Assembly (NCBI RefSeq): GCF_003918875.1
Contig: NW_025764926.1
Coordinates: forward strand, 434,001 to 498,000
Length of the DNA: 64,000 bases
Direction: 5' to 3'
DNA from: Haliotis rubra
Taxonomy: Eukaryota
Position 1 is the first letter of the stretch. The number at the start of each line of letters is the position of its first letter. A program made the translations under genes and the position numbers. Below are positions 9,122 to 39,544 of this stretch, piece by piece. The notes beneath the pieces are model-generated. The model was not told the DNA's origin, did not search any database, and saw only the letters and a program-made list of their open reading frames with translations.

Positions 9122-12100
9122 CACAATACTATCTACAGCTTGAAAGAATGAGCTACAACAATACTATTTACAACCCAGAACACTGACCAGAAGTGCACAC
9201 GCAGTAAGAAAATCATAGTATTGAAACAAAATTAAACAATGAAAGAGCAGAGGCTATTCCGTGCAACAAACAATCAGTCTCAAGTATATGTACCTTTGTG
9301 AATACACGATTCGAGAGTGAAGTAGATTACGGCGGCTTTTGAAATCTGCTTCTGTTCTGTGTCAGAACGAAAGTAATATTGATTCACGTATCAAAACGAA
9401 AATAGAAAATGACAGAGTGACGTTCACATAATGAAATAAATACCTCAGATATACCTGTCAATTGAAGAACATTACACATATTAAATAGTATACTTAAATA
9501 CAGCTAAGTATCTACACGCTGAATTACCTGGCGATGTACAACAGAGAGAGGATCCGTGATAATCGTACAGGACCTGGAGACCAGAGTACTACTGTCACTG
9601 GGCACCGCAGGAACGCCTGTCTCAATATACTTGTAGATAGAGGCTGTGACGTAATAGCATAGTCACATCAAACATTGAGGTTTACAGGAATGTATACTGC
9701 ATCAGGCTAAAACAGCAATGAGTCAAAACGGCGCCATATGTAAGTCACTTATTCGGTGCAACTTCTATGAAGGAAAAGAAACTTTCCCAATTTTGTATAT
9801 AAAATGTATTATTGTACAACCAATGCAAAGTTATTATGGATACAAGCGATTATGTAGATTATCATACATATTTAACAACCCTTTACTTTTGTTAGGCTGT
9901 GTCCCATCCGGGATTCGAACCCATACTATCAGAGTCAGGCACATAATCGCCAGCACAAAAAGCCATAATCATCCATGCTTCAACTTGAGGAATAAGGATT
10001 TGGGGTAAAAAAACCTCGTCTAAATAGTGTAGTCAGCAATTCATCCGAGTGAATTATTGTGTATGCTTACTTTTGATTCTCAAATATTATTTGTGGAATG
10101 GTAAACAATTTAATAAATTGACCGACTAATTGCTTCGGGCAAGTGCCTCTGAAATATCAAGTCTAGATTCAACAATTCAGCGACTACGGCACACAATCAC
10201 CAATGTCAGCTACCCGGACCGCCCAATCCACAGATAGTCCTCTCTCACGTCCACCATTGGTTACTGAGGTTGTTATGACTGACAGCAACACCATTTCGGA
10301 ACGCTTCAAAATATTCAATGACGACACATCCTTTCCACGAGTGCGTATGGATGACTATTTAAATTGTTTTCAGGCGCGTAGCAAGCCATTTTTGTGTGTA
10401 AGCCTGATAGGTTGCAAAGCGTTATATTTAGATAGCATTGAGGGCTTGCCAACCCTTTTTAGCCAAAATCATGTGTAAGCCCGTGCTTTTTTTCATAATA
10501 GTCGCTACGCCCTTGTGATATGTACTTATTGTCCCTGTCATCTTGCTGTCTGCTGTGTATTCAGTGTGCTGTGTTCACGATTCACCCAAATACTCCTACC
10601 CAAATATGATATCGAGACGGCCTGTGGGGACTGACATAAGTGATAAACAGTATGTCCGATGCAATATCATATTTTGACTGGTTCCATATGTTCCCGTGCG
10701 TTTGTGATGGGGAAATTCCCATTTTCAGCAACAGGACCATGATAATGACATGGCTATTGCTTAGTGATTCATAAACACAAGTTGACGATACAGTCAAACT
10801 GAGCAAGGCTATTTGCTTTATTTTCAAACATTCTTATGTTGACTTGAGTAGCTGAATGTCCGCAACAAAGGTAACACTGGCCAAGAAAACATATCCTTAT
10901 TATTTAGTATTTACTGAAACGGAATTTAACCGCGAACACGAAGTTTGATAAGGGTTATATGTTCGTTGTGACTTGCGAAGACTGTTTAACTATTGGAAAG
11001 AAATGCCTCATAATCTATGTACATGTATACTCCTATAAATTGACTAAAGTAAAGGAAGAGAATCGGGACGTCAGTAACTTCGTTTAAGTTGTATGTAAAT
11101 TGAATACGTTCTAATAATCAGGAATACGGAGATACATGTACACCTATGCCACGTCTGTCTCTATTACACGTGGCTAAGCACTGCGGCCATGTACACGGTC
11201 AACACATGTACACTTTGACAACACCTTCATAATACAGACCAACATACATCCGGCCGCGCCCATCTATATCAACTCCTAGGGGAGTGTCAATACCGTCCTC
11301 ATCTGTCAGTATGTTTCTAACAAACTCTCCTGCCTCAGTCAAATGGATGACTCTGTGTAGAAAGAAGTATGTAACCAGAATGTCACCTCTGCAAGTACTT
11401 GTGATACTCTGAGGACACTCCAGTACTGTGTCTCCTGTAGGTCATTTGTGCGTATCGAGACGTAATATCCCAGTACTTTTTTGCTGGTCGTAATGGCTGA
11501 CAGCACTTCCAGATCCGGGTTAACTCCTACTGTCACAATCTGGTTTTCAGCTGGAACGGTCACAGCCACCTGGCTGTGTGGCAGCTTAGTCATACCATCC
11601 GGAAATGTAGTTAGACGTAGCCTACTATGATAAGGTTGATTGTTTCTGGTGTAGAATGACTTCACACTTGTGTGGTTCCAGTCTGTGACCACAACTGTAT
11701 CTGTACCATCCACCATCATCACGGTCAGGTCAGCTAAGCGTGCTGCACGTCGTTCTCCTGCTATTCTGACTGTAATGGTCTTGAAGCACTGGATCAGCCG
11801 TCAGGTCCACATCGCCATCACGCAGGACGTCTATCGCACCCAGCTGCAGATCACTCAGAGCTTTACTCAGCTTCTCAATGTCATGTCTGAATGTGACCCT
11901 GACCATTCTTCCATCCTCTGCGCCCCCAACAGCCTCCACGACACCTGCCTCACAGCCCTGATACATCTCATACACATCCATGTCACATTCAGATTGTAGA
12001 GCCTGGTCTATCAGCTCAGTCTGTTGTTGGTACATCTGTAATGACAACTGTCTGGATTTTATGCATGCTGTGGATGTGGATGTCTGACATCTATTTGAGA

Positions 12101-12949
12101 TTATCCAGAAGTTGCTTTCCCCTAAAAGTGATCTGTTGTATGGCTTCCTGTGTTACAGACATTATGTTTTCTTCCATTCGTGAGTATCGAGACGTTTCTT
12201 TATTTACTTTCGACTGCAGTTCATTAGTTTTGGACTCCTTGTCTTCTTGCTTCTTTGATAACGTCTCCTTCTTCTTCTTGAGTTCTGTTTTCATGGTCCC
12301 GATCTGTGACTCGATTGTGACAACGGAATCACACTTCCTATGATACATGATGCAACATTTGTGACAAACCATCTTCTCGCAATCCTCACACAGAAACTCC
12401 ACGCATTCCTGCTTGTGTTCCTTGCACGTGACCTTTCGCTTTCTTTTGACCTTGGCCTCCACACACAGGTCAGTGACGTCATGGTGACGTGTAGATGGGA
12501 TGCGACTTTGCACTCTGTCACATTTCTCACATAGTGCGTCATCACAGACAAAACACCAAACAACAGCTGGAGTTGTCTCCCCTCCCTCATTACAGTATGC
12601 ACAAAAGGTTGTATCTGGAAAGCATTGGTACATTTAGGAAGTATTTTAACACAAATGAAACACGAATTTACACGACAACTTTCACAAAAACCAAACACAA
12701 CCTGATACTAATTGTTGCATACCACTTACCAGAATTTAATGTGGGACTTAAATAACTTTAGTCAGGCACACATGCATACAAAGGCAAGCGCAGCTACAAT
12801 TGGATCAGAATTGCAGTACATGTGAGTGTGAATTGTATCCAAAGCAACTATATACATATATACCCTTGGAGTCCAAATGTCCCTGCATGGCAAAGCTTGG
12901 CTTGACGTCATCTGCCCATTCCTCCACTGGTTTCTCAGGGTCAGACACT

Positions 12950-13764
12950 TGTTACGAGAGTGTGTGTTTGGTAATTTGTAATTGTAATATCACATTGATT
13001 AGGTGATGATTATTATGGGTCACAATGGTTAAAGTTTTGACTGGGGATTAGGCTCGCATCTGGCATTATATATGTTTTCAGTGGCAATAGTATTTGTAGC
13101 GGTACGCCTTTCTGATAGTGCTTCAGAGTTGCCTCCCCTTGGGACAATCTTTTGTATTTGTTTTGACTTCCGGTCGTGTGTTCCACATGATTCCGCATCG
13201 TTCTGAGAGAATAATTATACCAAACGACGTTAAAATATGATACTTGTTGGTCCCTGCCTGGCGCTCGGCATTAATGGGTACAACAAGGACTGGTCGGCTG
13301 GGAGTCAGTATAATGTGTCTGAGTGGGGAATTCATGCTTCACTGCGGCATGGTATCTCAGTGGGCTAGCACTATAAAACCAGCTTAAGTCTGGGCTAGTA
13401 CAAGCAGCCACACATACACATACACACGCATGCACGTCGTCATATAAGCAAAATATTCTCAAGCACGACGATAAACCCAATTTCACCTCACACCTCACAC
13501 CTCGTCTATATTCAAGTGTTGTCATTGTAAACAACCTTCAATCAGTATATTTGTTCTCACTGTGCATGTCAAGACTCTGGTGAGTTAATATTTTATATTT
13601 GTGACCCAATATTGTAGATTTGTGACTCAATTGCATTGTACTAGATATCTTGCTCATTGTTTGCTCAATATATAATTGTATATTTTAGATTTGTCTGTGT
13701 TCTATTTTGCTCATTCAAAGGGGACTCTTAAACCTTTTGTTACGGCAAATTATTAACCGTAACA
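12950..13764. mobile_element. Solo LTR (Gypsy-like) inserted in the TRIM copy 1 RING exon, with a nested SINE
   Basis: TGTTACG...CGTAACA termini; 4-bp TSD CACT at 12946-12949 and 13765-13768. The empty site GGGTCAGACACTTTCGTCATC is present in copy 3. Confidence 0.85.
13224..13503 (+). mobile_element. SINE family C, 5'-truncated, nested in the solo LTR
   Basis: Near-identical to the body and tail of the full copy at 16036-16390. Confidence 0.85.
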
Positions 13765-14016
13765 CACTTTAGTCATCTTCCTGCACAAAGGGCAGATGAC
13801 AGACTTGGCATTGATGGCTTCTGGTCTGATTTTGGTGTAGTTAATGACACATTTCCAACAGAACGTGTGATAACACACAAGTGTACAGGGATCGACGAAC
13901 ACCTCTGTACATATTGTACACGTTAGGAAGTGTTCAGCCAGCTTCTGGGTAGTCGCATTCTGGAAGGATATAACCAAGCAGATGCAATGTGTTGGGTACG
14001 TACTCGATGATGTAAA

Positions 14017-21699: not shown

Positions 21700-23948
21700 T
21701 CAACACATGTACACTTTGACAACTCCTTGATAATACAGACCAACATACATCCGGCCACGCCCATCTATATCAACACCTAGTGGTGTGTCAATATCGTCCT
21801 CATCTGTCAGTATGTTTTCGACAAACTCTCCTGCCTCGGTCAGATGAATGACTCTGTGTAGAGAAGAGTCTGTAACCAGGATGTCACCTCTGCAGGTACT
21901 TGTGATACCATGTGGCTCTTTCAGTGCTGTGTCTCCTGTAGGTCTGTAGTGGAAAACAGTCTCACCCTCGGGGGTCAGACACACGACAGATTTAGATCCC
22001 CAGTCAGACACCAGGATGTGCCCTGTCCTTGTGCTACAAAGGTAGGAGGGATCCGGAAAGACCTTGGTACCACTCTTGTATGTGCTGATTGACTTCAGCA
22101 CGTCTCCTGTCATATCCAGGATATCGACACAGGGGAGGAGACGGAGAGCTTGCTGCGAGTGTTGACGGGTTCAGAAATGTTATACCCCAGTACTGTTTAC
22201 TGGTAGTGATGGTTGACAGCAGTTCCAGATCCGGGTTGACACCTACTGTTACAATCTGGTTTTTAGCTGGAACTGTTACAGCCACCTGGTTGTACGTCAG
22301 CCTTGTCAAACTTTCCGGACAATTCCTCAGACATAGCCTGCTGTGACAAGGTTGATTGTTCCTGGTGTAGAAAGACTTCACACTGGTGTTCTCGCAGTCT
22401 GTGAGTACAACTGTTTCTGTACCATCCACCATCATCACGGCCAAGTCAGTCATCCGTGCTGCACGTCGTTCTCCTGCTATTCTGACTGTAATGGTGTCTT
22501 GTAGCACTGGATCAGCCATTAGGTCCACATCGCCATCACGCAGGACGTCTATCGCACCCAGCTGTAGATCCCCCAGCGCTTTACTCAGCTTCTCAATGTC
22601 ATGTCTGAATGTGACCCTGACCATTATTCCATCCTCTGCGTCCCCAACAGCCTCCACACCACCAGCCTCACAGCCCTGATACATCTCATACACATCCATG
22701 TCACATTCAGATTGTAGAGCCTGGTCTATCAGCTCAGTCTGTTGTTGGTACATCTGTAATGAAAACTCTCTTGATTTTACACTTGCTTTCAGTTGTCCGA
22801 TGTGGATGTCTGACATCTCTTTGAGATTATCCAGAAGTTGCTTTCTCTTAAACGTGATCTGTTGAATGGCTTCCTGTGTTACAGACATTATGTTTTCTTC
22901 CATTCGTGCGTATCTAGACATTTCTCTATTTAATGACGATTTCAGTTCATCAGTTTTGTATTTCGTGTCTTCTTGCTTCTTTGATAACGCCTCTTTCTTC
23001 TTCTTGAGTTCACTTCTCATGGTCTCGATCTGTGACTCGATTGTGACAAAGGAATCACACTTCCTGTGATAAATGATGCAACATTTGTAACAAACCATCT
23101 TCTCGCAATCCTCACACAGAAACTCCACGCATTCCTGCTTGTGTTCCTTGCACATGACATTTCGCTTTCTTTTGACCCTGACCTCCCCACACAGTTCAGT
23201 GACGTCATGGTGACGTGTAGCTGGGATGCGATTGTGCACTCTGACACATTTCTCACATAGTGCGTCATCACAGACAGAACACCAAACAACAGCTGGAGTT
23301 GTCTCCCGTCCCTCTTTACAGAATGCGCAAAAGTTTGAATCTGGAAAGGATTGATATGTTAAGGAAGTAGATCTTAACACAAACGTAAAAGGTGGAATCA
23401 ATAACAGTTATCATTATACCCAAAGATCACCTGATAGCGATTTATGCACATTACTGCCAGAATTAAATGTAGGACTTTTATCATTTCAGACACTTTGACG
23501 ATGTAATAACGTCGTACACTCAAAATCTCTTACTGTGATATTGCATGGTACATTATATATTCACTGATTTATAAAAGACAAAATAAAACTTAAAGCATTC
23601 CTGGAGCTTCAACTTGTGATTCGATCAGCAGTACATGTGAGTGTATATATACATACCCTTTGATTCCGGACCAAACGAGTCCAAAAGTCCCTGCATGACA
23701 AAGCTTGGCTTGACGTCATCTGCCCATTCCTCCACTGGTTTCTCAGGGTCAGAGACCTTCGTCATCTTGCTGCAGAAAGGGCAGATGAGCGACTTGGCAT
23801 TGATGGCTTCTGGTCTGGTTTTGGTGAAGTTGATTACACATTTCCGACAGAAAGTGTGATAACACACAAGTGTACAGGGATTGACGAACACCTCTGTACA
23901 TATTGTACACGTCAGGAAGTGTTCGGTCAGCTTCTGGGAGGTCGCCAT
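21700..23948 (-). CDS. TRIM-NHL E3 ligase copy 2 (RING, B-box1, B-box2, coiled coil, NHL); one extra G at 22132-22135
   Basis: Exon 23657-23948 (ATG; C3HC4 RING CTIC...CYHTFCRKC...CPFC; donor G|GTATGT) and exon 21700-23340 (acceptor TTTCCAG). Removing one G from the GGGG run restores SPPCVDIL as in copy 3 and gives 643 aa. Confidence 0.85.
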
Positions 23949-24329
23949 CTGGAAGGATATAACCAAGCAGATGCTATGTGTAGGTAAGTACACAATGATA
24001 TACAGGTTAACACCCTTATGTCGAAGTTAGAGTAACCAAGGTAAATACTGCAAGGTTCGACACAACCGTAAATGATGACGATGTAATACGAATTTGCCAA
24101 GCTTTCACTTCGAGACAGCCGTAACCTTGACATATCAACAGTGTTTTTACAAGGGGCGGTGGCGTAGCCTTGTGGTTAAAGCATTCGCTCGTCATACCGA
24201 GGACCAGGGCTCGATCCCCCAGATGTGTACAACGAGCGAAGACCATTTCTGGTGTCTCCAGGCGTGTTGGATATATGTGAAATATTGTTAAAAGTGGCGT
24301 AAAATTAAACTCACACACTATTATAGGAT

Positions 24330-24790
24330 ATTTATATAGCGCACATAGTACAAGCTCAAGGCGCTGGAATGTTCCCTTGATCAATGGATATCTTTTTTCT
24401 GGCATTCTGTTTTATTAACCATCTCAACTTCATGGGTAGTATTTAACTCATGCAGTCTGTTAGGCCCAGCGAGTTATCACACAGCCTCATCCTCACAAGG
24501 TACCCATTTGCAGGCGCTGAACTGGGACACATAGTCACAGTATTTTGTCCAATGATACTGCACGTTACTGTACCCGCAACGAGGTGTCTGCACGTGTTCG
24601 TGTGTCCACCATCTAGTTACCTACCATCGGATGAGTGGGTTCTTGAAAGTGCACAGGGTTGTGTAGTAGGTGTTGTGACAACGCCTGCAAGTAATGATGC
24701 TCCAAGGTTTTTACACTCGGTCACAAGTGGGGATCGATCCAGGAACCTTTCGCTTATTAGCGCGGCGCTTTATACACGTCGCCCACCTTG
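24330..24790 (-). mobile_element. SINE family D (tRNA head plus CORE-like domain), degenerate
   Basis: Homologous to 42262-42650. Confidence 0.6.
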
Positions 24791-25442
24791 CCACTCACAT
24801 ATTTGCAAAGAAACTACCGTCGACTCAAAGATGAAGTCGCTAACAGTGACCTTCACATACAAACATACTCCAAAAGCGCCTTTGAAAATTTCATACGGGT
24901 ATTATTATTCAAGGTTATTGTTCAGATAGCGAAAATTGAAAGTTGCATCAGAAATTCTGGAAAAGGATTCTCTCCTTGCAAGGCTGCCCATCATCAAAGA
25001 CAACAAATAGTGCTACATCTTGTCGGGTGATTATCCCCACCACTAAGATGTTATTTACGATAACCCCTTAAATATAATAACAAGAAATATCTACAGACAG
25101 CCTGTGTTGATACGTACGTGACGTGTGTCGTTATTTCATGGCGGTAATGCCACCGTGGTCCAACTGTAAGGGTTTTCTGAGAAGTCTATGGGACGTATGG
25201 GTTAATGAATAGAATGTGCATGCATTTCTTTATTTTAAAACAATAATTTATTGAATTTATTTGCCCTTCTTGTACTTAAAATGTCGGATCTGCTCATTCT
25301 GCTGCAGAGTTGTATACTGTGGAACGGGGCGTTTATCATATAATGCAAAGGGAGGTAATCGCACAGTAGTTAACAAGAGGATGTTGGTGTAAAACGGAAT
25401 GAATTGAAACCAGAACTGTTCATATTGTTTGAGCATGACTGT

Positions 25443-25627
25443 NNNNNNNNNNNNNNNNNNNNNNNNNNNNNNNNNNNNNNNNNNNNNNNNNNNNNNNNNN
25501 NNNNNNNNNNNNNNNNNNNNNNNNNNNNNNNNNNNNNNNNNNNNNNNNNNNNNNNNNNNNNNNNNNNNNNNNNNNNNNNNNNNNNNNNNNNNNNNNNNNN
25601 NNNNNNNNNNNNNNNNNNNNNNNNNNN
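25443..25627. other. Assembly gap (N run)
   Basis: Run of n. The flanks (about 25200-25440 and 25680-25915) are diverged direct repeats of each other. Confidence 0.99.
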
Positions 25628-26334
25628 AGGGAAATGTTGTTGTGCATATAACTATTTTCTGTCGGATTAATCTCGTGTGGGTAAATGAATAGAAAGTGCA
25701 TCCGCTTTTGTAAAACAATTGTGATTAACGTGTCATATTTGCTCTTGTGCCATAACTGAAGGGTCTTCTGCAGTGATGTTATTTACTGTATAAAGACAAT
25801 GTTTACTATCAATAATAAGGGGAAGCAATCGCACTGTTGTGAACAATAGGGTGCAAGTGTAATACAGGAAATGAATTGAAACCTATACTGTTCATATTGA
25901 TTTGTGTATGATTGTGTTGACTGAACTTTGAAAATTGTTCTTGAGACATTTCGTTCTTTTCTTAATTCACAAAGGGCAACATAATTTTATTCATGACAAC
26001 TCTTCGGTCGGCTCCATCTCACGTTAAAGGCATTTCTTTTGTTGAGACAATCGTAACAATGTTTCAATTTTTCTGACCAGAGAACAGAGAAAGAACATTT
26101 ATAGGAACACTTGGACTGAGCCGTTCGTGTTGTAGTACAAGGTATAGAGTATGGAGGTTGAACATTATTGCAATACATGTATATATTTTCCTTTGTAAAC
26201 TTAACAATCTACAGATTAAGAAAGATGGATGACACCTTTATTGTTATATTATGAAGCTTTGGTATGGATAGGTGTGCTAGCTTGAGAGCGATTTAAGAAT
26301 CTATACCGAAACGTCGGATCATGATAATAATTAT

Positions 26335-26751
26335 TAGGGGTGACTATTGAGGGGCAAACAACTATTGCTATAGCGATAGTCTATTGAAACATACTATTGC
26401 AATAGTTTTTTCTCTCTCCTTGATATGTCTCATTTGAAGTTATGTCCCAAATTAATGTATAGTTTATATGCGATACTACAAGTTGAAGTAGTCTTTTAAT
26501 TGCTGACAAGGAACTTGAAACCCAGATCAAGTAAACAGTTAAAACATAAACTCAATGAAGCTGCAAGTCTACACCCAAACATCTTGTATTTTGCAATGCG
26601 CATTTATCAACAGAAGTCAATTACTAAACTATCGATAGTCACACATACCATCGATGCATCGATAGTTTTTCGTTTCTACCATCGATTATTTGCTATCGGA
26701 GACTCAACAATTTGCAATACATCGATTGTTCGATGCATCGTTACAGCCCTA
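26335..26751. mobile_element. hAT-type MITE
   Basis: TAGGGGTGAC...GTTACAGCCCTA termini; perfect 8-bp TSD ATAATTAT at 26327-26334 and 26752-26759. Confidence 0.85.
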
Positions 26752-27707
26752 ATAATTATATTACTGAAGTTGTCATCCATAAAGTGTCATTCCTTTGATA
26801 ATAAAGTATTAATGAATTTCTTATTATTCATAAACTTCTACAATTCCAATCAAACAAATCAATGTTCAAACATGAAATTTAGAGTTGCATTTATGAGGTG
26901 AAACAATATGGCTTCATTTTCAGTAATATTTTTAATGTACTTTTCTAAAAAACAAACGCATTACCAATGTATATTTCTTACCAATTTATAGTAATCATGA
27001 ATGTCGTTACAAATGTTAAATACCAAACAAACTGATTTTTCCATATCTCCTTACTGCTATATTAGGTTCAACTGGTGTCATTTTTTCATTCAAAATAATA
27101 TTTTTTCTCTGTTTTCCCACTTCTCTCAAGGTCATATAAATAGCTAATAAAATATCGTTGAAACCTCTTTGTCGCTGTATGAACGTCTTGCATCAAAACT
27201 GTCTTAACGCATATGAAGTGTATGGCGCAGCTGAATCGTGTGTGTACCACATATCTTGGACGACCTCATGTTCATAACGAAAGTAGCACGAGTGTTGTTA
27301 GCTAACTGATACAGATTTTGTCAGACAAGTCATGTAAAGATACCATATAAATTACCTTTTGAAAGTTACGACATGGACTGGTTGGTCTTCGATTTAATCC
27401 CACTAATACAATAATTACCTGTTACAACACGTATATCTCTGTGTGTCTGATGTAATATGAAACTAATCCGTAGCAGTGACAAGGAGAGAACGATTACTAA
27501 CAACCTCACACATACTTTGAGTGTAGTTTTGTTAGGTCTGTGTGTGAGCAGGGAGTGTAATACTATGGTGTAGATGGGCTTTTTATGGTGTTACGTAACA
27601 GATGTATGCGTGTGCGTGTGCGTGTGATTATTACTGACACACCAAAACTATCTGCGACAACCTACCTCGACTAAACCGTCCGTGTCACCAGACTACCGGG
27701 TGTGTGT

Positions 27708-27708
<1 letters not shown>

Positions 27709-27771
<63 letters not shown>
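27709..27771. repeat. (GA)n microsatellite in the predicted 5' non-coding exon/promoter of TRIM copy 2
   Basis: About 30 GA units; absent at the equivalent site in copies 1 and 3. Confidence 0.95.
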
Positions 27772-27774
<3 letters not shown>

Positions 27775-28311
27775 CATTTAGAGAGTTACCTCCCTTCCAG
27801 TCGAATGCGGTAGGAAACTGATAAAGTGAAATAGCCGACTGATTTGATACCCCGATTACATTTGTCACGTCTGTCCATTTCGTAATCAGTGATCAGTTCT
27901 TAAAAAGTTTAGAAATATTTTACATTCACACAAAAACGAGTATTTTTGAGGATGGTAAACCACATATATCCTCATTTGAAAGATATATAATGAAATGTAT
28001 ACCGAAATGACAAATGGCAGAAAACGTTCTATTTCCACCTTTGAGCTCAGTAAGTCCTTTAATAGGTATCTATCTGACACATACAAAACAAAGGTAACAT
28101 GCTTTTGTGACAGAGAAGGATTAACACGTCACAATTTAATTCTGGACTCACAAAAGTCCAGAAACTCTCCGCACTGTGGGCACTTCCTGACAAGAGATTT
28201 GACCAAATGAAACATGCAGTTCTTATGAATATATGCCAAGGATGAAAAAATGAAAAAATGTTTTTCGAAAACTTGAAATTTAGACTCGCTCGGACCTTCA
28301 CGGGCGAACAG

Positions 28312-28790
28312 TGGCCCATGGGCGAGAATGTTTAATTTCGATCAGAATTCATGTTTTGGAGGTTGTAAATGAATGAGTGTATGTTTATAAACATCATGAC
28401 ACAAATTTCAACTCATTTTGACTTAAATCGACTAACTTAGAGGGATATTTAAAAATCTCGCCCATGGGCGAAAAACATTTTGGCCCATGGGCGAGAATAT
28501 TTACTTTTACTCAATATTTATGTTTTGGAGGTTGTAAATGAATGAGTATATGTTTATAAGCATCATGACACAAATTTCAACTCATTTTGACTTAAATCGA
28601 CTAACTTAGGGCGATATTTAAAAATCTCGTCCATGGGCGAAAAACATTTTGGCCCATGGGCGAGAATATTTACTTTACTCAATATTTATGTTTTGGAGGT
28701 TGTAAATGAATGAGTGTATGTTTATAAGCATCATGACACAAATTTCAACTCATTTTGACTTAATTCAACTAACTTAGAACGATATTAAAA
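28312..28790. repeat. 169-bp subterminal tandem repeat (about 2.8 copies) with CGCCCATGGGCG palindromes
   Basis: Units start at 28312, 28481 and 28650. Confidence 0.9.
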
Positions 28791-29570
28791 AATAGATAGA
28801 GGACGAGTGTCAGAACACTATCAAGATTTTAACGTATTGTTACAGGAACAAAGTGCGAGTACTTTTATCTATCTTACAGGCAAGTAATCAAGTTGCACGA
28901 ACCAGACACTGCCGATAGACTCACCACAGACGTCCAGATACATTCAAAGCAGACATTACATAATTTTATCTCTAACTGTATATTATATCTGTAACTACTC
29001 CAACATGCCCGTATCATTCTGTATCATGCACTGCTGGCTTGTGTCGTGTGATTGCCAGGGCTGTCAAGTATCATGACGTTTGAGAGTGTCAAGCCTGTAT
29101 ACTTCAGTGTACGTTATCAGCATATAAAGTAGTCCACGTGATGACAAAACAGAGACCACCCATAAGTCCAAAGTGATTGTCTGTGCTCAAACTCGCCAGC
29201 CGTCCTACCTCGACTCTTTAAGCCCCATAGGTCAACGTTTATGCTTACAGTTAAAGTGTAACCCAATTTAATTTGGTTATTAGGACCCTGTATTTTTATC
29301 AGCTGCAGCTTAACTGTAATACCAAATTCATAAGCTATACTCCTACTCCTTCTACACACATAATGGCTAAGATAACCTTCTCACTTCTCTCCCCCGTCCT
29401 TCCTTCCCCATACCCCGACCCCACCTATTGTCTTTCTTCATAATTCCAAACCATGATCAATTTATACTCCTTGCTATCATCTTAGTCATACCTACAATTA
29501 TCTACACTCATTTATCATCTGCTTCACATTTTTTCATTTTTGGTGTCTGACGTTTCTTCTTCCAAATTAA

Positions 29571-29830
29571 ACCCGTGAAGGTCCGAGTTAGAATGAGCAT
29601 TCAGTAACCCATGCTTGTCTACCCGTGAAGGTCCGGGTTAGAATGAGCCTTCAGTAACCCATGCTTGTCTACCCGTGAAGGTCCGAGTTAAAATGAGCCT
29701 TCAGTAACCCATGCTTGTCGTAAGAGGCGACTAACGGGATTGGGTGGTCAGGCTCGCTGGCTCGGTTCCCAATTGCGCAGATCGATGCTCATGCTGTTGG
29801 TCACTGGATTATTTACAGACGCCGCCATAT
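29571..29830 (+). mobile_element. SINE family B copy with a triplicated 50-bp head
   Basis: ACCCGTGAAGGTCCG.GTTAGAATGAGC.TTCAGTAACCCATGCTTGTC occurs three times, followed by the body. Confidence 0.8.
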
Positions 29831-30054
29831 ATTTATTATCATGTTTGTAGCCGTTTTCATTCAAAATTCACTTAGGTTAACACCCCATCATTTGCATTTT
29901 TGGGGTATGGCGGTTTATCCCTTATTATAAACATATTAATTATTACTTTAGCTCCCACCTACCCTGTCGGCGTTATTGGCTACAGCCAGAAGCTGACGTT
30001 AAACTCATAATCATCATCATATGTAGTCACTAGGCACTTAAAACATTAGAAGTA

Positions 30055-31168
30055 ATGCCATGGAACAAGTTATCTAACTACAGTATGACGTGATATTGTA
30101 TAGTAGATGATTTGAGAATACAGAAGCACTGAAAAAGCATCGTTTTTTACCACCAAGGGCATAACTCTTGTGACCCAGTTCAGGATCGAATGATGACTGA
30201 AAATGTCAAAAATGCCGCTTCGCAACAATCTGCAAATGATCCAGAGTTCTATCATTTTTATGTGATATGGCTTCACAGTACAACACAAAGGTACTACCTT
30301 GTGTTGGAAACTGTATCTGACATACTGCTTCAATGATACATTGATTCATAAAACAGAACAGAAATCACAGCAAGATAAGCCCCATTACAGTAGCTTATTT
30401 ATTAATTTGTTAACGTACAACATGCGAAATAACTCAGTGCAGTTGGAAATGTGGCTCGTCAATGGTATGCGTGTACGAACAGATAATATCAAAACATACA
30501 CGTCGGAACAGTCAAAATTAAGAAATTGTTGAATATGAAATATTACTTTTAATTTGTAATTCTTGTAACATAAACAGTATTGTGAGAACTTTAACTGTAT
30601 TGAAATATGTCTTGTCAATCCTATTGACATTTGCCAATAACCACTTCCAAATAAAATAAATAGTCTATGCTGCTTCAGAACAAATAAAGGTTAATTAGGG
30701 AGCCATGCCATGGAACAAGTTATCTAACTACAGTATGACGTGATATTGTATAGTAGATGATTTGAGAATACAGAAGCACTGAAAAAGCATCGTTTTTTAC
30801 CACCAAGGGCATAACTCTTGTGACCCAGTTCAGGATCGAATGATGACTGAAAATGTCAAAAATGCCGCTTCGCAACAATCTGCAAATGATCCAGAGTTCT
30901 AGCCAGTTGGAAATGTGGCTCGTCAATGGTATGCGTGTACGAACAGATAATATCAAAACATACACGTCGGAACAGTCAAAATTAAGAAATTGTTGAATAT
31001 GAACTATTACTTTTAATTTGTAATTCTTGTAACATAAACAGTATTGTGAGAACTTTAACTGTATTGAAATATGTCTTGTCAATCCTATTGACATTTGCCA
31101 ATAACCACTTCCAAATAAAATAAATAGTCTATGCTGCTTCAGAACAAATAAAGGTTAATTAGGGAGCC
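30055..31168. repeat. Near-identical direct duplication (~650-bp unit; second copy internally deleted)
   Basis: ATGCCATGGAACAAGTTATC... starts at about 30055 and 30705; both copies end ...TAATTAGGGAGCC. Confidence 0.9.
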
Positions 31169-32602
31169 CCAACTGGGTAATTAAGGAAAGAAATCAATAC
31201 ACTGTCACTTCCTGCCCAGGACGTCACACGTCACCACTCAGGAGCTAAGGGCATTGTCAAACCTTCTCACAAAGGAAAAAAAAGCATCAAAACTGTGTTT
31301 TTATTCTACGTGACACTCGGTATGTCGTCATAGTATTCATTGTTGAATAAATTCTATCGTGGGCAACCCCCCACACTTGCGAGGTGTACCTACCCAGGTT
31401 CGCACGTTTCGTTTTAATATTTTGTGATCAATTATTTTGTAATTCCCGTCTGCCCGTCACGGCTATTCTTCGCCCGAGGTTTTAGGGGAGTACAATCTTG
31501 AACATATGCTTTAAACATATTTATATTCTCAGAGAATCTGGTTTGGTAACCGGTAATACCTCACCGGTACATATATAATATAACAGAATACACAAGAACT
31601 GGATACACAAAAACGTCAAATTAATTCCTATCATAAGTAGTAGCAAACTGTCACTGACGCCTTCGGCTAGGTGGATAAAACGGGACGCAAAAATTCCCGT
31701 ATACGCCGCATCACAATAGTAAACAGAAATTATTTTATCGAATGTTTAAAGACAGACAGACAGATAGACATAGTTTTTTAAAGTGTCCCATGTATGTAAA
31801 CAAGATATAAAATTCATATAAAATAAACACGTAATGTTTTACATACATCCAGCCTTAACAGGCTTATGGGACACTGTTAATCTAGAGGGTCAAAATATAC
31901 ATCATAGAAAGATTTTTATAAAACCATATAAATACATAACCTTAGGCAAAAATATCTTAAATCTCTCTTCATGTAAATATAGCATGAAATTCAGTCATAT
32001 ATTTCACTAACATGGTACTGACTAGTCGATTTGAACCAGTGCTTCACGGTTCACTGACTGCTGTGGATGCATATTATCAAGGGTACAGCTTCATTAAGCC
32101 TTATGCAACCAACCATAAAATGTGCTGTTTTAAGCGGTCTGTCTTTTGGGAGGTCTATCTGGTGTCAGCCCGATCTGTCGACAAATAAAAAATAGGATGT
32201 CCCTAACTGTCGACAAAACAAAAAACCCGGAATGTCGACATCGCGTGGTCAACATACCGTGACGGTGTTAATTAATGAAAGAGAATGTTTGCTTAGTGGT
32301 TGCAAGTGGCCATGGCGGCTACAGCTATGCTCGTATCATGAGTAAATGAATTAAGTAGATTAAAGAGAATGTCGTTTTAACAATTTGCAAGAGAATTAAG
32401 GTTGCAAAAACAGATTATTATTTTACGTTATGCGAGTGGAAGGATTACCATTTTGGAGTTTAACATGCAACAACATGAGAAACGGAGAGCTTACAAATTA
32501 TTTTGTGATATTGGGAGTAGAAGGATTATCGAAATGCTTTTGTAAACATTTCGCATGTGGGTATATATAATAGATCATGAATATTTTGTCACCACTGTCA
32601 AA

Positions 32603-33026
32603 ATGGCAAATGCTATGGTGCGGGTTACATTGATTGACAACATTCATAGAGGTCAGAATCTTTACCACAATGGATTCAAGTACAAAGTCAACAGAAGCAG
32701 AGGTCAGAAAACATACTGGAGATGTACAGAGGCAACCTGTCCATCATATCTGGTTACAGAAAACAACCTGCTGAATATAGTCGGTCAAGGTCACAACCAT
32801 CCTGCTATTCCGTTTCTTACTGAAGTTGATGCGTTCAAGTCAAAGCTCCATCATCGTGCAAAGACTGACAACGCTACGCCTATCCCCCAGACGTCGCTAC
32901 CGAATCATCGACGCTAGGATTCAATCCTTGAAGGCCGACCTTCTTGCCGACAGACTTACCGACTTGAATTACACAGACCATGTGTCAGAGTCGCTTCATC
33001 TTGGCCGAACATTCAGATTACTTTAG
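32603..33026 (+). pseudogene. Internally deleted MULE-type transposase: FLYWCH zinc finger joined out of frame to the C-terminal tail
   Basis: FLYWCH motif GQNLYHNGFKY...KTYWRCTEATCPSYL...HNHP. After about 32890 another frame reads RRRYRIIDARIQSLKADL...YTDHVS, which resembles invertebrate MULE C-termini. The DDE core is missing. Confidence 0.7.
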
Positions 33027-33524
33027 TGCACATATAAAGTAATTTTGGCAAGAAGAAATAACTGGACTCATCTTTTATATATTTATTACTTATACACCTG
33101 CAGAAAGTACTTATTTATATAAAACACACACACAAATATATTGTGTTAGCTTTATGAAATATATGAACAAATATGCTATATTATGTGACATATGATACAT
33201 GCATGTTGTTATATTGACTGAATAAATATATTGTCTACTTTATATATCACACTCTGTTTTAATTAGTTTGTTAATTCGAGAACACTGGGAGTGAAGTCAC
33301 TCACTCATGTAGAACATCACCTCCCTTTTCCCGGACTGTCGACAAGTATTTTGGACGGATTATTTCTTGTTGTCGACAGTCCGGGCATAAACCGGTCCAT
33401 CTTATGGGAAGATACCGGTTTTTTCCATGGGGCGGGATATAAATGATTTATTCTGCCTGATGATTTGTACAACACCACCCAAGCAGTGCACAACCGTGCA
33501 CCCGGCATACATTGTAATTTGTTC

Positions 33525-34168
33525 GGTTGTAGAAAAAAGTCATGGAAAAAAGTCATAGATTTGGTAGGGATATAAAGTCATAGGAAAAAAGTCATAAACT
33601 CAAAAAAGGTCAGGATTGTAACAAGTCATAACAATATTATTATCAACAGCACTACCACATTTGAACCTAACTTATAAAATTAATGTAATCATTCAAGTAA
33701 AATACATCATCATACCACTTTCATCTGCAACAGCACTACATCAGTCAGTTGTCCTAGCACATTTTATTTAACCGAATGTTCCATCCAACACCGTGAAGAG
33801 TTTGGATCACAGTCTTAGGGCCAGCGTGTCTTATATTAGCTGCTAGAAGGAAGCCATTTGAGTAAAAAGTATTAACTGATAATCCCATGAGTTCATTAAT
33901 TGGTATGATATCGTCAAGCTCAAAGCTAGGTATAAAAACAATCATGTGACTTGTGACTTTTAATCCCACAATCCGTTAAGAACTAAACAAATAATAATCT
34001 GTTCATTTCTCCTGTTTTGATAAGATCCAATTGCTTACAGCGTCACACTAAAGGAATAATTAACTTGAAAGTGAAATAGTATAAACAAAGTAAATAACTG
34101 GAGAACATGATGTTTTATAATAGTTATTTTTTCTATGACTTTTTTTCCATGACTTTTTTCCGTCCACC
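33525..34168. mobile_element. MITE (probably MULE-type) with GAAAAAAGTCAT subterminal repeats
   Basis: Inverted ends GGTTGTAGAAAAAAGTCATGGAAAAAAGTCATAGA / TCTATGACTTTTTTTCCATGACTTTTTTCCGTCCACC; flanking ATTTGTTC/ATTTGTTG. Confidence 0.7.
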
Positions 34169-34387
34169 ATTTGTTGTAGGTCACGTGAATCAATCAGAGA
34201 TAGACATTATTACATGAGGTAGGGTAAATGTGCATTGTACGTGCTTAGGAACCTTGAACTTGCAGTTACATTTCATTATTTGTGTACAGATATTGGAATA
34301 ATTTATGGATGTATTGATGCAGGGACTCCATTATGTTCTTGTTGACATTGTTGGTAGCGAGAGGTGTTCCTAATTTTCACAGTTTGG

Positions 34388-34763
34388 AGTGAGTGAGCGA
34401 GTGAGTTTAGTTTTAGGCTGCACTCAACAATATTCCAGCTATATTAAGGCGGTCTGTAAATAATCGAGTCTGGACCAGACGATCCAGTGATCAACAGCAT
34501 GAGCATCGATCTGAGCAGTTGGATGAGTGAGTTTAGTTTTACGCCACACTCAGCAATATTCCAAATATATGGCAGCGGTCTGTAAATAATCGAGCCTGGA
34601 CCAGACAATCCAGTGATCAACAGCATGAGCATCGATCAGCGCAATAGGGAACCGATGACATGTGTCAACCAAGCCAGCGAGCCTGACCACCCGATCCCGT
34701 TAGTTGCCTCTTACAATAAGCATTGGTTACTGAAGGCCAATTCTAACCCGGACCTTCACGGGT
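34388..34763 (-). mobile_element. SINE family B, one full and one partial copy in tandem
   Basis: Matches the family B consensus with a (TCAC)n tail. Confidence 0.8.
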
Positions 34764-36465
34764 TTCACAGTTTTGTCTTCTTGAGAGGGTACGTAAGTCT
34801 CAAAACATCTGAAGTAAATTTAGATATACCAGGTTTATAATAGTAGGATACTTGTGTTTTTAAGAGATGGCTAAATTTGTGCACAATCGCCAACGTATGA
34901 AGGGACCATGTAAGTCCTTCTAGGGTGGGTGGGGTGAAGGGGTGGTATGGGAGCATTGAGGGGGGCAAGGCAGGCTGAGCGAGGTTGAGAGGTGGGCGCG
35001 GACGTCGGAGAGTTTAAATTTCAAGTTTTCGATAACATTTTTTTTCATTTTTTCATCCTTTGCATATATTCATAAGAACTGCATGTTTCATTTGGTCAAA
35101 TCACTTGTCAGAAAGTGCCCACAGTGCGGAGAGTTTCTGGACTTTTGTGAGTCCAGAATTAAATTGTGACGCGTTGATTTAATATCTGGCAATCAATTAT
35201 TAATGGCGAGCCCAGCCAGTGTCATGTTGTCTGGGCTGTGTTAAGCCTTTACATACACATGAAACTATACTTCGTACAAAGCCCAGAGGCGCAAGTCCAT
35301 ATCAGATTTAATTGGAAATCATTATCTTGTAAAGCACAAGGGTATACAGTATTAGCTTTCATTTCAAGAACTGAAGATGAGTCCACTTGCACAGTTAACA
35401 AATTGATTTAACTGATAAAGCTTGTGAACTATGGAACAAGTGGCAGATAGCACGAGCACCAACTAACCGGGGCACGATGACCCACATTCAGTCAAGGAAC
35501 ACACATTGTAGCTACACACGGTTGAAACATTTGATAGAGGTGACCTACGTGTATTCATGTCAAAATATATTGTAGATATATCAACTAATTGTATGTGAAC
35601 AATTCTGTCTTCAATCCGTTCAGTCATATATATACAACCCATTCCATTCCATAGGGCAAAATACGAAATATATACACAAACCAATCAATTGATCGATAGA
35701 TCAAATAATTCAGTTGTTATTTTAGAATTACGACTACTGCGTGGATGTGCAGAGGCTCCACTACTTACAAGTAATGAAAACAAAACTTTTTGGACCCACA
35801 GAGTGGGACAGAATTTTTACCCCCACAGAGAAACATTTCGATTGTATAAGTTTGTCATTTTGACTGAGCATTTGACATGTGCCCCGGCTGGTTTATCTCG
35901 TAGATATATACTACTGAAATTATGGGGACTTCAGTCCATCAACAGAAGTACGTCGTAAATATAAAGCTTCAAAAATGGGAAACTTCAGTGTTTTCTCTTC
36001 ACCCAAGAACAAAAAATATTGATCAAATTATTTAAAATAATTTCATTATGAAGAAAATGTTAGACTGGGTACCACTCGACGTGATGTACCTTAAGTCAAC
36101 AATGGCCGTTATTTGTGGCTGTGTGCCGAGAAATTTGGCGAACACATTTTGATTCGCGGGCGTTTCGTTTAAAGGTATATAAACTAATTGAAGATTATAT
36201 ATTTAGAAAGCTGTGAATAAATGCATTCCATACATAATTCAAATGACACGTAAATCCGACTTGTTGAATAATTATTGCAAGTCTTATTTGGGGATGTCAT
36301 TATGCTGCTCTCCTGTAGTAGCATTGAGAGGATTGATGGGTTTATGGATTATTGTTTTAAATGTGTATATTTGAGCTTTCAAATATTGTCCGTGTCCAGA
36401 CATACATCTATACCACGTCCTTCCACGCTATTCCATGTGTACAATTACTGCGACTATGGCCATTG

Positions 36466-39133
36466 TCAACACATGTACATCTTTACAATTCCAAGATTAT
36501 ACAGGCCAACATACACCCGACCACGTCCATCTATATCAACTCCTACTGGATCTTGAATACCGTCCTCATCTGTCAGTATGTTTCTTACAAACTCTCCCGA
36601 CTTAGTCAGATGAATGACTCTGTTTAAGGAGGAGTCTGTCACCAGGATGTCACCCCTGCTGGTACTTGTGATACCACGTGGCTCCTTCAATGCTGTGTCT
36701 CCAGTAGGTCTGTAGTGGAACACCGTCTCGCCCTTGGGGGTCAGACACGCGACACCCTTGGATGCCCTGTCAGACACCAGGATGTGTCCTGTATTTGTGG
36801 TGCAAAGGTTGGCGGGATACCGAAAGATGTTACCATTGTCATGAGGATTGAATGACTTCAGCACGCTTCCTTTCATACCAAGGATATCTACACAGGGAGG
36901 AACCAAGGAGCTTGCTGCGAGTGTTGACGGGTTCACATATGTTGTATCCCAGTACTGTTTAGCGGTTGTGATGGTTGACAGCAGTTCCAGGTCCGGGTTG
37001 ACTCCTAGTTTTACAATCTTGTTTTTACGTGGAACTGTTACAGCCACCTGGTTGTGTGGCAGCTGAGTCAGACCATACGGAAAGTTTGTTAGACTTAGCC
37101 TACTGTGACATGGTTGATTGTTCCTGGTGTAAAATGACTTTACACTTTCGTTCACAGGATCTGTGACTACAACTGTATCTGTACCATCCACCATCATCAC
37201 GGTCAAGTCAGCTATCCGTGCTGCACGTGGTTCTCCTGCTAATCTGACTGTAATGGTGTCTTGTAGCACTGGATCAGCCGTTAGGTCCACATCGCCATCA
37301 CGCAGGACGTCTATCGCACCCAGCTGTAGATCCCCCAGCGCTTTACTCAGCTTCTCAATGTCATGTCTGAATGTGACCCTGACCATTCTTCCATCCTCTG
37401 CGTCCCCAACAGCCTCCACACCACCTTCCTCACAGCCCTGATACATCTCATACACATCCATGTCACATTCAGATTGTAGAGCCTGGTCTATCAGCTCAGT
37501 CTGCTGTTGGTACATCTGTAATGAAAACCCTCTTGATTTTACACTTGCTTTCAGTTGTCCGATGTGGATGTCTGACATCCCTTTGAGATTATCCAGAAGT
37601 TGCTTTCTCTTAAACATGATCTGTTGTATGGCTTCCTGTGTTACAGACATTATGTCTTCTTCCATTTGAGCGTATCGAGACGTTTCTTTAGGTACAGTTG
37701 ACTTCAGTTCATCAATTTTTAATTTCGTGTCTACTTGCTTCTTTGATAAAGTCTTTCTCTTCTTCTTGAGTTCTGTTTTCATGTTCTCGATCTGTGACTC
37801 GATTGTGACAACGGAATCACACTTCCTGTGATACATGATGCAACATTTGTGACAAACCATCTTCTCGCAATCCTCACACAGAAACTCCACGCATTCCTGC
37901 TTGTGTTCCTTGCACATGACCTTTCGCTTTCTTTTGACCTTGGCCTCCCCGTAAAGGTCAGTGACGTCATGGTGACGTGTAGCTGGGATGCGACTGTGCA
38001 CTCTGACACATTTCCCACATAGTGCGTCATCGCAGAAAGAACACCAAACAACAGCTGGCGTTGTCTCCCGTCCCTCTTTACAGAATGCACAGAAGGTTGT
38101 ATCTGGAAAGCATTGGTAGAATTAGGAAGTATTTTAACACAAATGATACACGAATTTATTCGACAACTTTCACAACATCCAAACACAACCTGATAGTAAT
38201 TGTTACATATCACTTACATCAACTAAATGTAATAACTTCAGACTGTTTGATCACGTAATGCACTCCAAATCACTCACTCAGTTTATACACTAATTTCTAA
38301 CAAGCACAGATACAAAGGCAAGCACAGCTACATCTTCGATCAGAATTGCAGCAAACGTGAGTGTGAATTTTGTCCAAAGCAACCATTCGTAACTACTCGT
38401 GTCATTCCCTCTCGTGGCCATGTTTACGACTAGGCTCTGTCTAAGCACAAACGGGCACCGAGATGAAAATAGTCTAGTACTAGTACCAAGGAAAGATAAC
38501 TATGAAGTTCCAAACATGGCTACTCCAAGAATACCCTATAGCTATATTCCGTGGACAAAACAACTATACAGTCATTTCCTTTGTAAGTATGTTTCAGTGT
38601 TGAAAGTTGCTGATCCTTTAGCTCAAAGTTTATTTTAAATTGTGCTCTGCATAGTTACCGAAGTTTCAAGGTTCAACGATGCCGCCATTTTTATGCTTCG
38701 AAATGCGTTTTACTACGTGCGATTTGATTGGTTTGCCACGATTCTTGGCAGTAATGGCGTACGATAGGGGTACGAGTCTTCTTGTAGGTCACGGAAAGAG
38801 GCGAGTAGTTACGAATGCAAAGCAACTATATGTATGTATACCCTTGGATTCCGGACCAAACGAGTCCAAAAGTCCCTGCATGACAAAGCTTGGCTTGACG
38901 TCATCTGCCCATTCCTCCACTGGTTTCTCAGGGTCAGACACTTTCGTCATCTTGCTGCAGAAAGGGCAGATGAGAGACTTGGCATTGTCGGCTTCAGGTC
39001 TAGTTTTGGTGTAGTTGATGACACATTTCCGACAGAAAGTGTGATAACACACAAGTGTACAGGGATTGACAAAAACCTCTGTACATATTGTACACGTCAG
39101 GAAGTGTTCGGTCAGCTTCTGGGAGGTCGCCAT
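36466..39133 (-). CDS. TRIM-NHL E3 ligase copy 3, intact, 642 aa (TRIM2/3/56/71-like architecture)
   Basis: Exon 38842-39133 (292 bp; RING; donor G|GTATAC) and exon 36466-38102 (acceptor TTTCCAG; B-box1 CAFC...WCSFCDDALCGKCVRVH, B-box2 CKEHKQ...CEDCEKMVCHKC...HRKC, coiled coil, NHL repeats such as EPRGITSTSRGDILVTDSSLNRV). Intron phases are compatible and there are no internal stops. Confidence 0.93.
38384..38817. mobile_element. MULE-type MITE in the TRIM copy 3 coding intron
   Basis: Perfect 16-bp TIR CATTCGTAACTACTCG; 9-bp TSD CAAAGCAAC at 38375-38383 and 38818-38826. Empty site in copy 1 near 12840. Confidence 0.9.
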
Positions 39134-39544
39134 CTGGAAGGATATAACCAAGCAGATGCAATGTGTAGGTAAGTACCCGATGATATACAGTTGAACACTG
39201 TTGTATCGAAGTCAGAGGGACCGAGATAAGTACACACTACAGTTGAACACCGTTGTGTCGAAGTAAGAGGGACCAAGGTAAATACCACTAGTTATCCTAG
39301 TTTCGACTCAAGCTGAAAATGATAAAGATGTAATACGAAGTTGCCAAGCTTTCACTTCGAGACAATCGTAATTTCGACATATCAACGGTATTTGACTGTA
39401 CGTTATCTGTCATGGTATGTCAAGACACTGCCAAATACTCTCAGAAATCTTAAAGTGCCAACGAACCTATTCATATGTACGGAATGTAGATGTCCAAACA
39501 CGAATTTTCCCAAGACTTTAACAGGTGTATAAGAATAACATGTA

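Follow-up and report, generated by a model that had tools for sequence, protein, structure and literature searches.

Results

Organization of the locus and status of the gene copies

The window analysed here is a stretch of 64,000 nucleotides from the blacklip abalone, Haliotis rubra (RefSeq assembly GCF_003918875.1, contig NW_025764926.1, positions 434,001 to 498,000; coordinates below are those of the window). It carries three homologous TRIM-NHL genes, copies 1 to 3, which lie head to tail on the minus strand and share the domain order RING/B-box/B-box/coiled coil/NHL; no fourth was found in the window. An initial annotation had described them as three paralogs combining a near-invariant RING with a hypervariable NHL ligand-binding face. 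The three genes are indeed homologous; however, only copy 3 is intact, while copy 2 is frameshifted in the assembly and copy 1 is dead.

Copy 3 consists of two exons separated by a 739-nt intron with GT-AG ends. Exon 1 (38842..39133, minus strand, GT donor at 38841) holds the start codon and the C3HC4 RING, residues 1-97, recognised by the Pfam models zf-C3HC4 and zf-RING_UBOX. Exon 2 (36466..38102, minus strand) is open from its AG acceptor to the stop codon and encodes B-box1, B-box2, the coiled coil, a linker and the NHL domain, with Pfam matches to B-box and NHL; the NHL domain occupies 36466..37233 (minus strand, residues 388-642). The open reading frame (ORF) is intact and encodes 642 aa, and the spliced product is 100% identical to the RefSeq entry 'protein wech-like [Haliotis rubra]' (P0001).

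The layout of copy 2 is the same, with exon 1, the RING exon, at 23657..23948, an intron of 316 nt and exon 2 at 21700..23340 (both exons on the minus strand); exon 2 encodes the B-boxes, coiled coil, linker and NHL domain, the last at 21700-22471. Alignment to copy 3 places a +1 frameshift of the assembly within the NHL domain, at a run of four G (22132..22135; C4 on the coding strand) that contains one extra base, and because of this frameshift RefSeq lists the gene as a truncated product of 532 aa, 'E3 ubiquitin-protein ligase TRIM33-like' (P0004). When public short-read contigs were aligned to 21500-24100, a contig from DNA run X1 (394 nt, 4 mismatches) lacked one base exactly at 22132, which restores the frame, and the same base was missing from a contig of X6, probably an RNA run from another organism (712 nt, 39 mismatches). 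A second X6 contig joins 23657 to 23340 (CT..AC on the plus strand, that is, GT..AG on the minus strand), the predicted intron of copy 2, and therefore a spliced transcript of copy 2 or of a close ortholog exists. Two independent runs have contigs without the extra G, and one spliced contig fits the intron, which weakens the view of copy 2 as a true pseudogene. The frameshift is probably an assembly homopolymer error or a segregating allele, and since the short-read contigs do not support it, RefSeq probably under-calls what would be an intact TRIM-NHL gene of 643 aa. In all codon analyses copy 2 was taken without its extra base.

Copy 1 (11199..13956, minus strand), delimited by blastn and tblastn against copy 3, is a pseudogene with fragmented ORFs. 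Its RING exon is interrupted by an 813-nt insertion (12951-13763) flanked by a 6-bp target duplication; further lesions are an in-frame TAG at codon 274, deletions of 8 nt and 2 nt, 22 nt in place of approximately 234 nt of the NHL domain (codons 484-562) and 1-nt indels toward the 3' end. The insertion has short inverted ends (GTTACG...CGTAAC) and a core of about 280 nt that recurs at 16035-16314 and 57784-57992 with 92-94% identity, and it looks like a non-autonomous transposable element.

An assembly gap (N run, 25443..25627) interrupts the spacer that separates copies 2 and 3; its distance is about 1.5 kb, upstream, from the copy 2 ATG and 10.8 kb from the copy 3 stop. No TRIM exon or homology was found at the gap or between 23948 and 36469, so that the gap bears on the joining of copies 2 and 3 into one scaffold and on no reading frame. 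A gene-breaking gap was rejected, the gap being intergenic.

Domain architecture and predicted structure

The identification of the genes as TRIM-NHL is borne out by Pfam, by profile matches to solved structures and by structure prediction. Pfam reports a C3HC4 RING (zf-C3HC4, 3e-8; zf-RING_UBOX, 2e-8), two B-boxes (ANCHR-like_BBOX and zf-B_box) and an NHL repeat. The eight RING zinc ligands (C14, C17, C29, H31, C34, C37, C56 and C59) are invariant across 58 paralogs, as are the B-box Cys and His within residues 102-192. In the full-length AlphaFold model of copy 3, residues 198-307 form one helix of 110 residues, the coiled coil, with a predicted local distance difference test score (pLDDT) of 82-87; residues 308-375 are a low-confidence, disordered-looking linker, and residues 376-642 form the propeller. 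Neither Pfam nor this model gave a filamin/Ig domain between the coiled coil and the NHL domain.

The AlphaFold2 model of the NHL domain has six blades and 24 strands (pLDDT 94.9, predicted template modelling score 0.92), and its best Foldseek matches are the NHL domains of TRIM71, TRIM2, Thin, TRIM3, LIN-41 and Brat, with template modelling scores of 0.77-0.86. Consistently, a profile of the C-terminal 263 residues, built from 98 Haliotis paralogs, matches the solved NHL structures of TRIM3, TRIM2, Thin, TRIM71 and Brat with E values of 1e-27 to 1e-18. Because the RING is intact and strongly constrained (dN/dS 0.08-0.21; nonsynonymous over synonymous divergence per site), the abalone TRIM-NHL genes are predicted to encode active E3 ligases.

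Constraint on the RING and divergence of the NHL domain

Copies 2 and 3 differ at 2 of the 97 residues of the RING exon (F41Y and I49D) and at 65 of 255 aligned NHL residues, exactly as had been counted initially, and the paired motifs then listed (PES/PYG, DCEN/DPVN, PSY/PAN, PHG/PRG, PLG/PVG, DWG/DRA and YYQ/YNL) were all found again; PDG and DWNH, then taken from copy 1, come from a pseudogene. One loop had been described as swapped between the copies (ISTYKSGTKVFPD vs FNPHDNGNIFRY). The difference is real, but it is better described as a d-a loop with heavy substitution and a one-codon indel; the copy 3 version resembles that of H. rufescens relatives, and the change is assigned to the lineage of copy 2.

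By the Nei-Gojobori method (NG86), dN and dS between copies 2 and 3 are 0.013 and 0.162 in the RING (dN/dS 0.08), 0.054 and 0.104 in the B-boxes (0.52), 0.078 and 0.136 in the coiled coil (0.57), 0.030 and 0.010 in the linker (no ratio given), and 0.154 and 0.319 in the NHL domain (0.48). The RING carries three replacement changes and nine silent ones; its near-invariance, which the initial annotation had noticed, therefore reflects strong purifying selection and not recent homogenisation.

The nearest relatives outside H. rubra are a tandem pair in H. rufescens (P0002 and P0003, locus L001), 69% identical. Against these genes dS is 0.35-0.63 in every domain, and dN/dS rises from 0.10-0.13 in the RING to 0.20-0.30 in the B-box, 0.26-0.31 in the coiled coil and 0.49-0.54 in the NHL domain. 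The gradient of constraint from RING to NHL is thus reproducible between species, and the NHL domain as a whole stays below 1.

Evidence of gene conversion at the locus

Silent differences between copies 2 and 3 are distributed unevenly. Codons 255-401 hold 2.5 silent differences in 98 silent sites, against 70 in 330 elsewhere (Fisher p 8e-7), and the longest stretch free of silent change covers codons 323-412; we place a conversion-like tract at about codons 255-411. On the copy 2 side the tract, with almost no synonymous differences, spans 22400..22867 (minus strand, codons 256-411), and its counterpart in copy 3 is 37162-37629. The proportion of silent differences is also lower in codons 1-254, at 0.139, than in codons 402-643, at 0.275 (p 0.004). 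Alignment of the two introns fails except over the final 43 nt, and the alignable flanking sequence shows 79-85% identity. From the uneven synonymous divergence and the divergence of introns and flanks, the locus is a mosaic, for which the best explanation is an older duplication whose 5' and middle parts later underwent gene conversion at the exon level.

Gene conversion of the 5' half had been named as a possible full explanation of the contrast between RING and NHL. It contributes, with dS of 0.01-0.16 upstream and 0.32 in the NHL domain; as the whole explanation it was rejected, since RING and NHL lie about 2-fold apart in dS and about 12-fold apart in dN. The roughly 12-fold contrast in dN breaks down into about 2-fold due to time or conversion and about 6-fold due to constraint.

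Amino acid changes on the top face of the propeller

Strands a-d of each blade were identified in the model by three features, namely the strand order given by DSSP, the great length of the d-a connections and the closure of blade 6 by an N-terminal strand. We then followed Loedige et al. 2014 (PMC4015489) in taking b-c and d-a loops as the top face and a-b and c-d loops as the bottom. In Brat, the NHL top surface made up of the b-c and d-a loops is the RNA-binding platform (Loedige et al. 2014, PMC4015489). Between copies 2 and 3, 41% of residues differ in top loops, 24% in bottom loops and 18% in strands (top vs strands, p 2e-4), with dN/dS of 0.72, 0.36 and 0.37. The H. rufescens pair differs at 44%, 18% and 20% of residues, respectively (top vs bottom, Fisher p 0.007), with dN/dS of 1.46, 0.43 and 0.41. 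Across the 98 Haliotis paralogs the mean column entropy is 1.91 bits in top loops, 0.77 in bottom loops and 0.84 in strands (top vs bottom, p 1e-8). Top loops hold 30 of the 40 most variable columns, and several other variable columns correspond to the residue right after the blade Pro, the position picked out initially. The proposed clustering of NHL changes on the top face is therefore recovered, with loops based on the AlphaFold model, in copies 2 and 3, in the H. rufescens pair and in the 98 paralogs; family-wide, the top face is hypervariable, and conservation of the bottom loops equals that of the strands. Top loops carry a net charge of +2 in copy 3 and of +1.4 on average in the family (range -6 to +8); the bottom-loop mean is -2.2.

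Selection on the NHL domain of copies 2 and 3

Site models M0, M1a, M2a, M7, M8 and M8a were fitted with custom GY94/F3x4 maximum-likelihood (ML) code to a set of four sequences, two from the window (copies 2 and 3) and two from H. rufescens. For the NHL domain, the likelihood ratio test (LRT) statistic was 10.5 for M1a vs M2a (p 0.005, omega 4.1 at 6% of sites), 13.05 for M7 vs M8 (p 0.0015) and 10.3 for M8a vs M8. Twelve sites have a posterior above 0.8 (413, 416, 438, 440, 456, 519, 525, 526, 528, 571, 615 and 617 in copy 3), and each of them lies either in a top loop or at the residue that opens strand a. A parametric bootstrap with 31 data sets simulated from the fitted M1a gave a maximum LRT of 5.9, none reaching the observed value; when the most divergent loop was dropped, the LRT was 13.7. 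As controls, the RING gave an LRT of 0 and the whole 5' part was not significant. These results suggest diversifying selection in copies 2 and 3 at a few codons.

Selection in a sister cluster and extent of the family

Six further H. rubra paralogs, on scaffold QXJH01000498.1 of assembly GCA_003918875.1 (loci L002-L007), form a sister cluster. Their pairwise dN/dS is 0.6-1.6 across the NHL domain and 0.26-0.66 in the upstream part of exon 2, at similar dS. In the top loops the ratio reaches 2.46 by NG86 (confidence interval (CI) 1.57-4.49) and 3.43 by ML (LRT against 1 = 19.1, p 1e-5), and in the bottom loops it is 0.29-0.36. The comparison of M1a with M2a gave an LRT of 82.7, with 11% of sites in a class of omega approximately 10; top loops account for 13 of the 17 sites with P>0.9, and 6 of the 12 candidate sites from the window genes recur among the selected ones. 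On codon evidence of this kind, diversifying selection on the top face is demonstrated for the family. The recognition face that the initial annotation had called diversifying thus finds its support in the positive selection of the sister cluster, while in copies 2 and 3 the site models point to only a few codons. Top-loop dN is 0.23 in the young sister cluster and 0.29 between copies 2 and 3, while dS differs fourfold; from this we infer fast early diversification followed by saturation.

The 120 best of 169 matches (E <= 0.001) are all from Haliotis, with 43-69% identity apart from the two genes of the window itself, and roughly 50 of these 120 are H. rubra entries. Family-wide mean pairwise identity is 0.81 in the RING exon, 0.65 in the B-boxes, 0.63 in the NHL domain and 0.56 in the coiled coil. 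Aplysia has 22 TRIMs in total (PMC9334734). On the sister-cluster scaffold, TRIM-NHL genes (L002, L003; QXJH01000498.1) lie about 30-100 kb apart, interleaved with Arf-like GTPase genes, and some RefSeq models (P0037, P0110) fuse TRIM and ARF domains (PF00025), which represents either a TRIM23-like architecture or annotation read-through. No earlier account of NHL-face diversification, or of this abalone family, in molluscs was found in a literature search that was not exhaustive.

Surrounding sequence

A 52-nt tandem repeat stands just upstream of the copy 1 start (14016-14570, about 10 units) and again upstream of copy 3 (39186-39290, 2 units, 53-157 nt before the ATG), with a weaker match upstream of copy 2. 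Neither the H. rufescens locus nor any of the six sister-cluster loci has this repeat, which may be a promoter or 5' untranslated region minisatellite specific to the sub-cluster of the window. The spacer between copies 2 and 3 contains, at 30070-31094 (minus strand) and 28312-28793, two almost identical ORFs (MSIGLTRHISIQLKF...) and a 169-nt tandem repeat of about 3 units, which are local duplications, and also a 120-aa ORF with a FLYWCH zinc-finger domain at 32555-32917 (plus strand).

Elsewhere in the window, an intact 335-aa Tc1/mariner-type transposase ORF (5993-7000, minus strand; Pfam DDE_3 and HTH_Tnp_Tc3_2) marks the most GC-rich part, and a series of ORFs at 3677-5420 (plus strand) with a reverse-transcriptase match (RVT_1), AT-rich at a GC of 0.30, is probably a decayed non-LTR (long terminal repeat) retroelement. 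Three minus-strand stretches at 48267-48656, 59589-60074 and 62621-62956 comprise two near-identical ORF pieces and a possible N-terminal exon. The two pieces match Pfam DAO (flavin adenine dinucleotide (FAD)-dependent oxidoreductase) at 18.5 and 23.5 bits, under the gathering score of 27.9; the possible N-terminal exon has no Pfam match and carries a GxGxxG dinucleotide-binding motif. The stretches point to duplication of an exon or gene fragment from a possible FAD-dependent oxidoreductase.

Discussion

We consider it probable that the genes of the window are members of a large abalone-specific tandem family of TRIM E3 ligases with a constant RING and a diversifying NHL top face. Such a family would turn over by birth and death; the window holds one intact gene, one with a probable assembly or allelic frameshift and one dead gene. 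Purifying selection keeps the RING near-constant, gene conversion between neighbours would intermittently homogenise the middle of the gene, and amino acid change is focused on the top face of the NHL domain, that is, the b-c loops, the d-a loops and the first residue of strand a. This face is under positive selection in the younger sister cluster and evolves at an approximately neutral rate in copies 2 and 3, with a handful of candidate codons besides. A dimer held by the coiled coil would present two variable NHL faces to paralog-specific ligands, RNA or protein, and the constant RING would ubiquitinate the bound target or signal; the outcome would be a germline-encoded recognition repertoire.

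Several points weigh against this reading, most of them concerning copies 2 and 3 themselves. Domain-wide positive selection on their NHL domain is rejected (dN/dS 0.48); the initial annotation had held that a ratio of 1 or less across the domain, with substitutions spread at random, would speak against a diversifying face, and the ratio is indeed below 1 but the substitutions are not randomly placed. Their top-face ratio of 0.72 has a 95% CI of 0.37-1.43, the top loops of the four genes taken as a fixed partition give an omega of 1.03 (ML) or 0.96 (NG86, CI 0.67-1.42), not different from 1, and a top-face dN/dS of about 1 in the window genes cannot be told from complete relaxation of the loops. 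Clustering on the top rather than the bottom face has a p of 0.095 in these two copies alone, and the division into top and bottom loops is based on secondary structure and topology. The site-model result rests on four sequences, custom ML code and naive rather than Bayes empirical Bayes posteriors; once the most divergent loop is dropped, about three codons with multi-nucleotide differences drive the LRT, the B-box and coiled-coil control is borderline (p 0.047), and gene conversion, which clearly occurs, can inflate such tests. ML with F3x4 also gave higher dN/dS than NG86 (1.03 vs 0.64 for sister-cluster strands), the spliced X6 contig comes from a different organism, at about 95% identity, and the spread of top-loop charge from -6 to +8 argues against one uniform RNA-type ligand.

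If copies 2 and 3 had undergone no adaptive diversification, their top loops would have lost constraint after duplication, with conversion keeping the 5' half alike. This alternative, which we judge rather unlikely, draws on top-loop ratios that are not above 1 (0.72 for the pair and about 1.0 for the four taxa), on synonymous divergence 2-30 times lower upstream of the NHL domain, and on the company of copy 1, already a pseudogene, and of a copy 2 frameshifted in the assembly. It is opposed by the constraint on bottom loops and strands (0.36-0.37), which indicates that the propeller is maintained, by site models that reject the nearly neutral model (p 0.001-0.005) with the parametric bootstrap in agreement, by the clear positive selection on the same structural positions in the sister cluster, and by top-loop dN that is alike in old and young pairs (0.29 vs 0.23) at a fourfold difference in dS; moreover, the copy 2 frameshift is missing from independent contigs. 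That copies 2 and 3 are mis-assembled haplotypes or collapsed repeats, their differences being allelic or sequencing errors, is extremely improbable. A gap does lie between them and at least one homopolymer error candidate is present; however, overall dS is 0.19, the introns measure 316 and 739 nt and are unalignable but for their last 43 nt, the flanks are at best 79-85% identical, separate short-read contigs fit copy 2 specifically and NCBI lists two genes. Duplication by haplotigs or assembly was rejected on the intron and flank divergence and on the tandem pair that H. rufescens also has. With respect to what the diversifying face would bind, the family might be adaptive and yet non-immune, its NHL face being directed at fast-evolving targets of the animal's own, for example reproductive proteins or RNAs from transposons or the germline. 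This would fit with what Brat, LIN-41 and Mei-P26 do as RNA regulators, with nearest solved structures that are RNA-binding NHL domains, with the RNA-binding top face of Brat (Loedige et al. 2014), with a mean charge that is higher in top than in bottom loops (+1.4 vs -2.2) and with a region rich in transposable elements. We nevertheless regard it as unlikely: top-face charge is wide-ranging (-6 to +8) and the canonical TRIM-NHLs that regulate RNA are conserved genes present in one copy (PMC2533329), although the present evidence does not separate an endogenous from an immune role. The immune version, a tentative possibility by analogy with TRIM5 and finTRIMs, is that of a convergent intracellular pathogen-recognition repertoire on the NHL top face, in which dozens of TRIM E3s would bind viral RNA or protein through this face and not through B30.2 loops, and copies 2 and 3 would be two specificities.

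NHL-type TRIMs of vertebrates, flies and worms are known as conserved, few-copy developmental RNA regulators. The NHL profile and model of the abalone family match the structures of these canonical members (Brat, LIN-41/TRIM71, TRIM2, TRIM3, TRIM32, Thin/Abba and Mei-P26; class VII, subfamily C of Marin), whose top face of b-c and d-a loops is a known ligand or RNA surface (PMC4015489); the abalone proteins may bind RNA. A filamin domain, absent from the abalone family, is present in TRIM2, TRIM3 and TRIM71, and TRIM32 is without it, so that it does not define the class. NHL-type TRIMs belong to the conserved 'group 1', with a mean Ka/Ks (the nonsynonymous to synonymous rate ratio) of 0.13 and 1:1 orthologs, while the dynamic 'group 2', whose members carry SPRY, does not occur in invertebrates (PMC2533329). 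Unlike the canonical members, which are conserved, few per genome and have 1:1 orthologs, the abalone family has dozens of copies per genome, a hypervariable top face and an NHL dN/dS of 0.5-1.6; with these ratios, and with Haliotis paralogs making up all 120 matches listed, it departs from the slow evolution and 1:1 orthology of group 1.

The expanding, fast-evolving TRIMs all use B30.2/SPRY (PMC2533329, PMC3137616), and in the fish ftr, btr and hltr families and in TRIM5alpha positive selection acts on B30.2 variable loops (PMC3137616). [quoted passage not shown] Loop-focused positive selection of the TRIM5alpha/finTRIM kind is seen in the sister cluster (LRT 19.1 and 82.7), and in the window genes at few sites (LRT 10.5-13.7). 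The recognition domain, in contrast, is an NHL beta-propeller and not B30.2/PRY-SPRY. TRIMs pairing a constant ligase with a recognition surface that diversifies are a known design, which here would be built on an NHL propeller rather than on B30.2. Among marine molluscs, lineage-specific tandem expansion is described for the immune gene families C1qDC, TLR, IAP and IL-17 as well; those families are mostly secreted or membrane receptors or apoptosis regulators, whereas the abalone family is one of putative cytosolic E3 ligases.

The contribution of the window itself is modest, consisting of two more members, a pseudogene, exon-level evidence of conversion and a correction to the annotation of copy 2. 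The candidate specificity-determining positions listed above can be taken into binding experiments, and they are relevant to farmed abalone under the threat of viral disease. If true, the reading proposed here would extend the logic of a constant effector with variable recognition to a new fold and a new phylum, as a convergent case.

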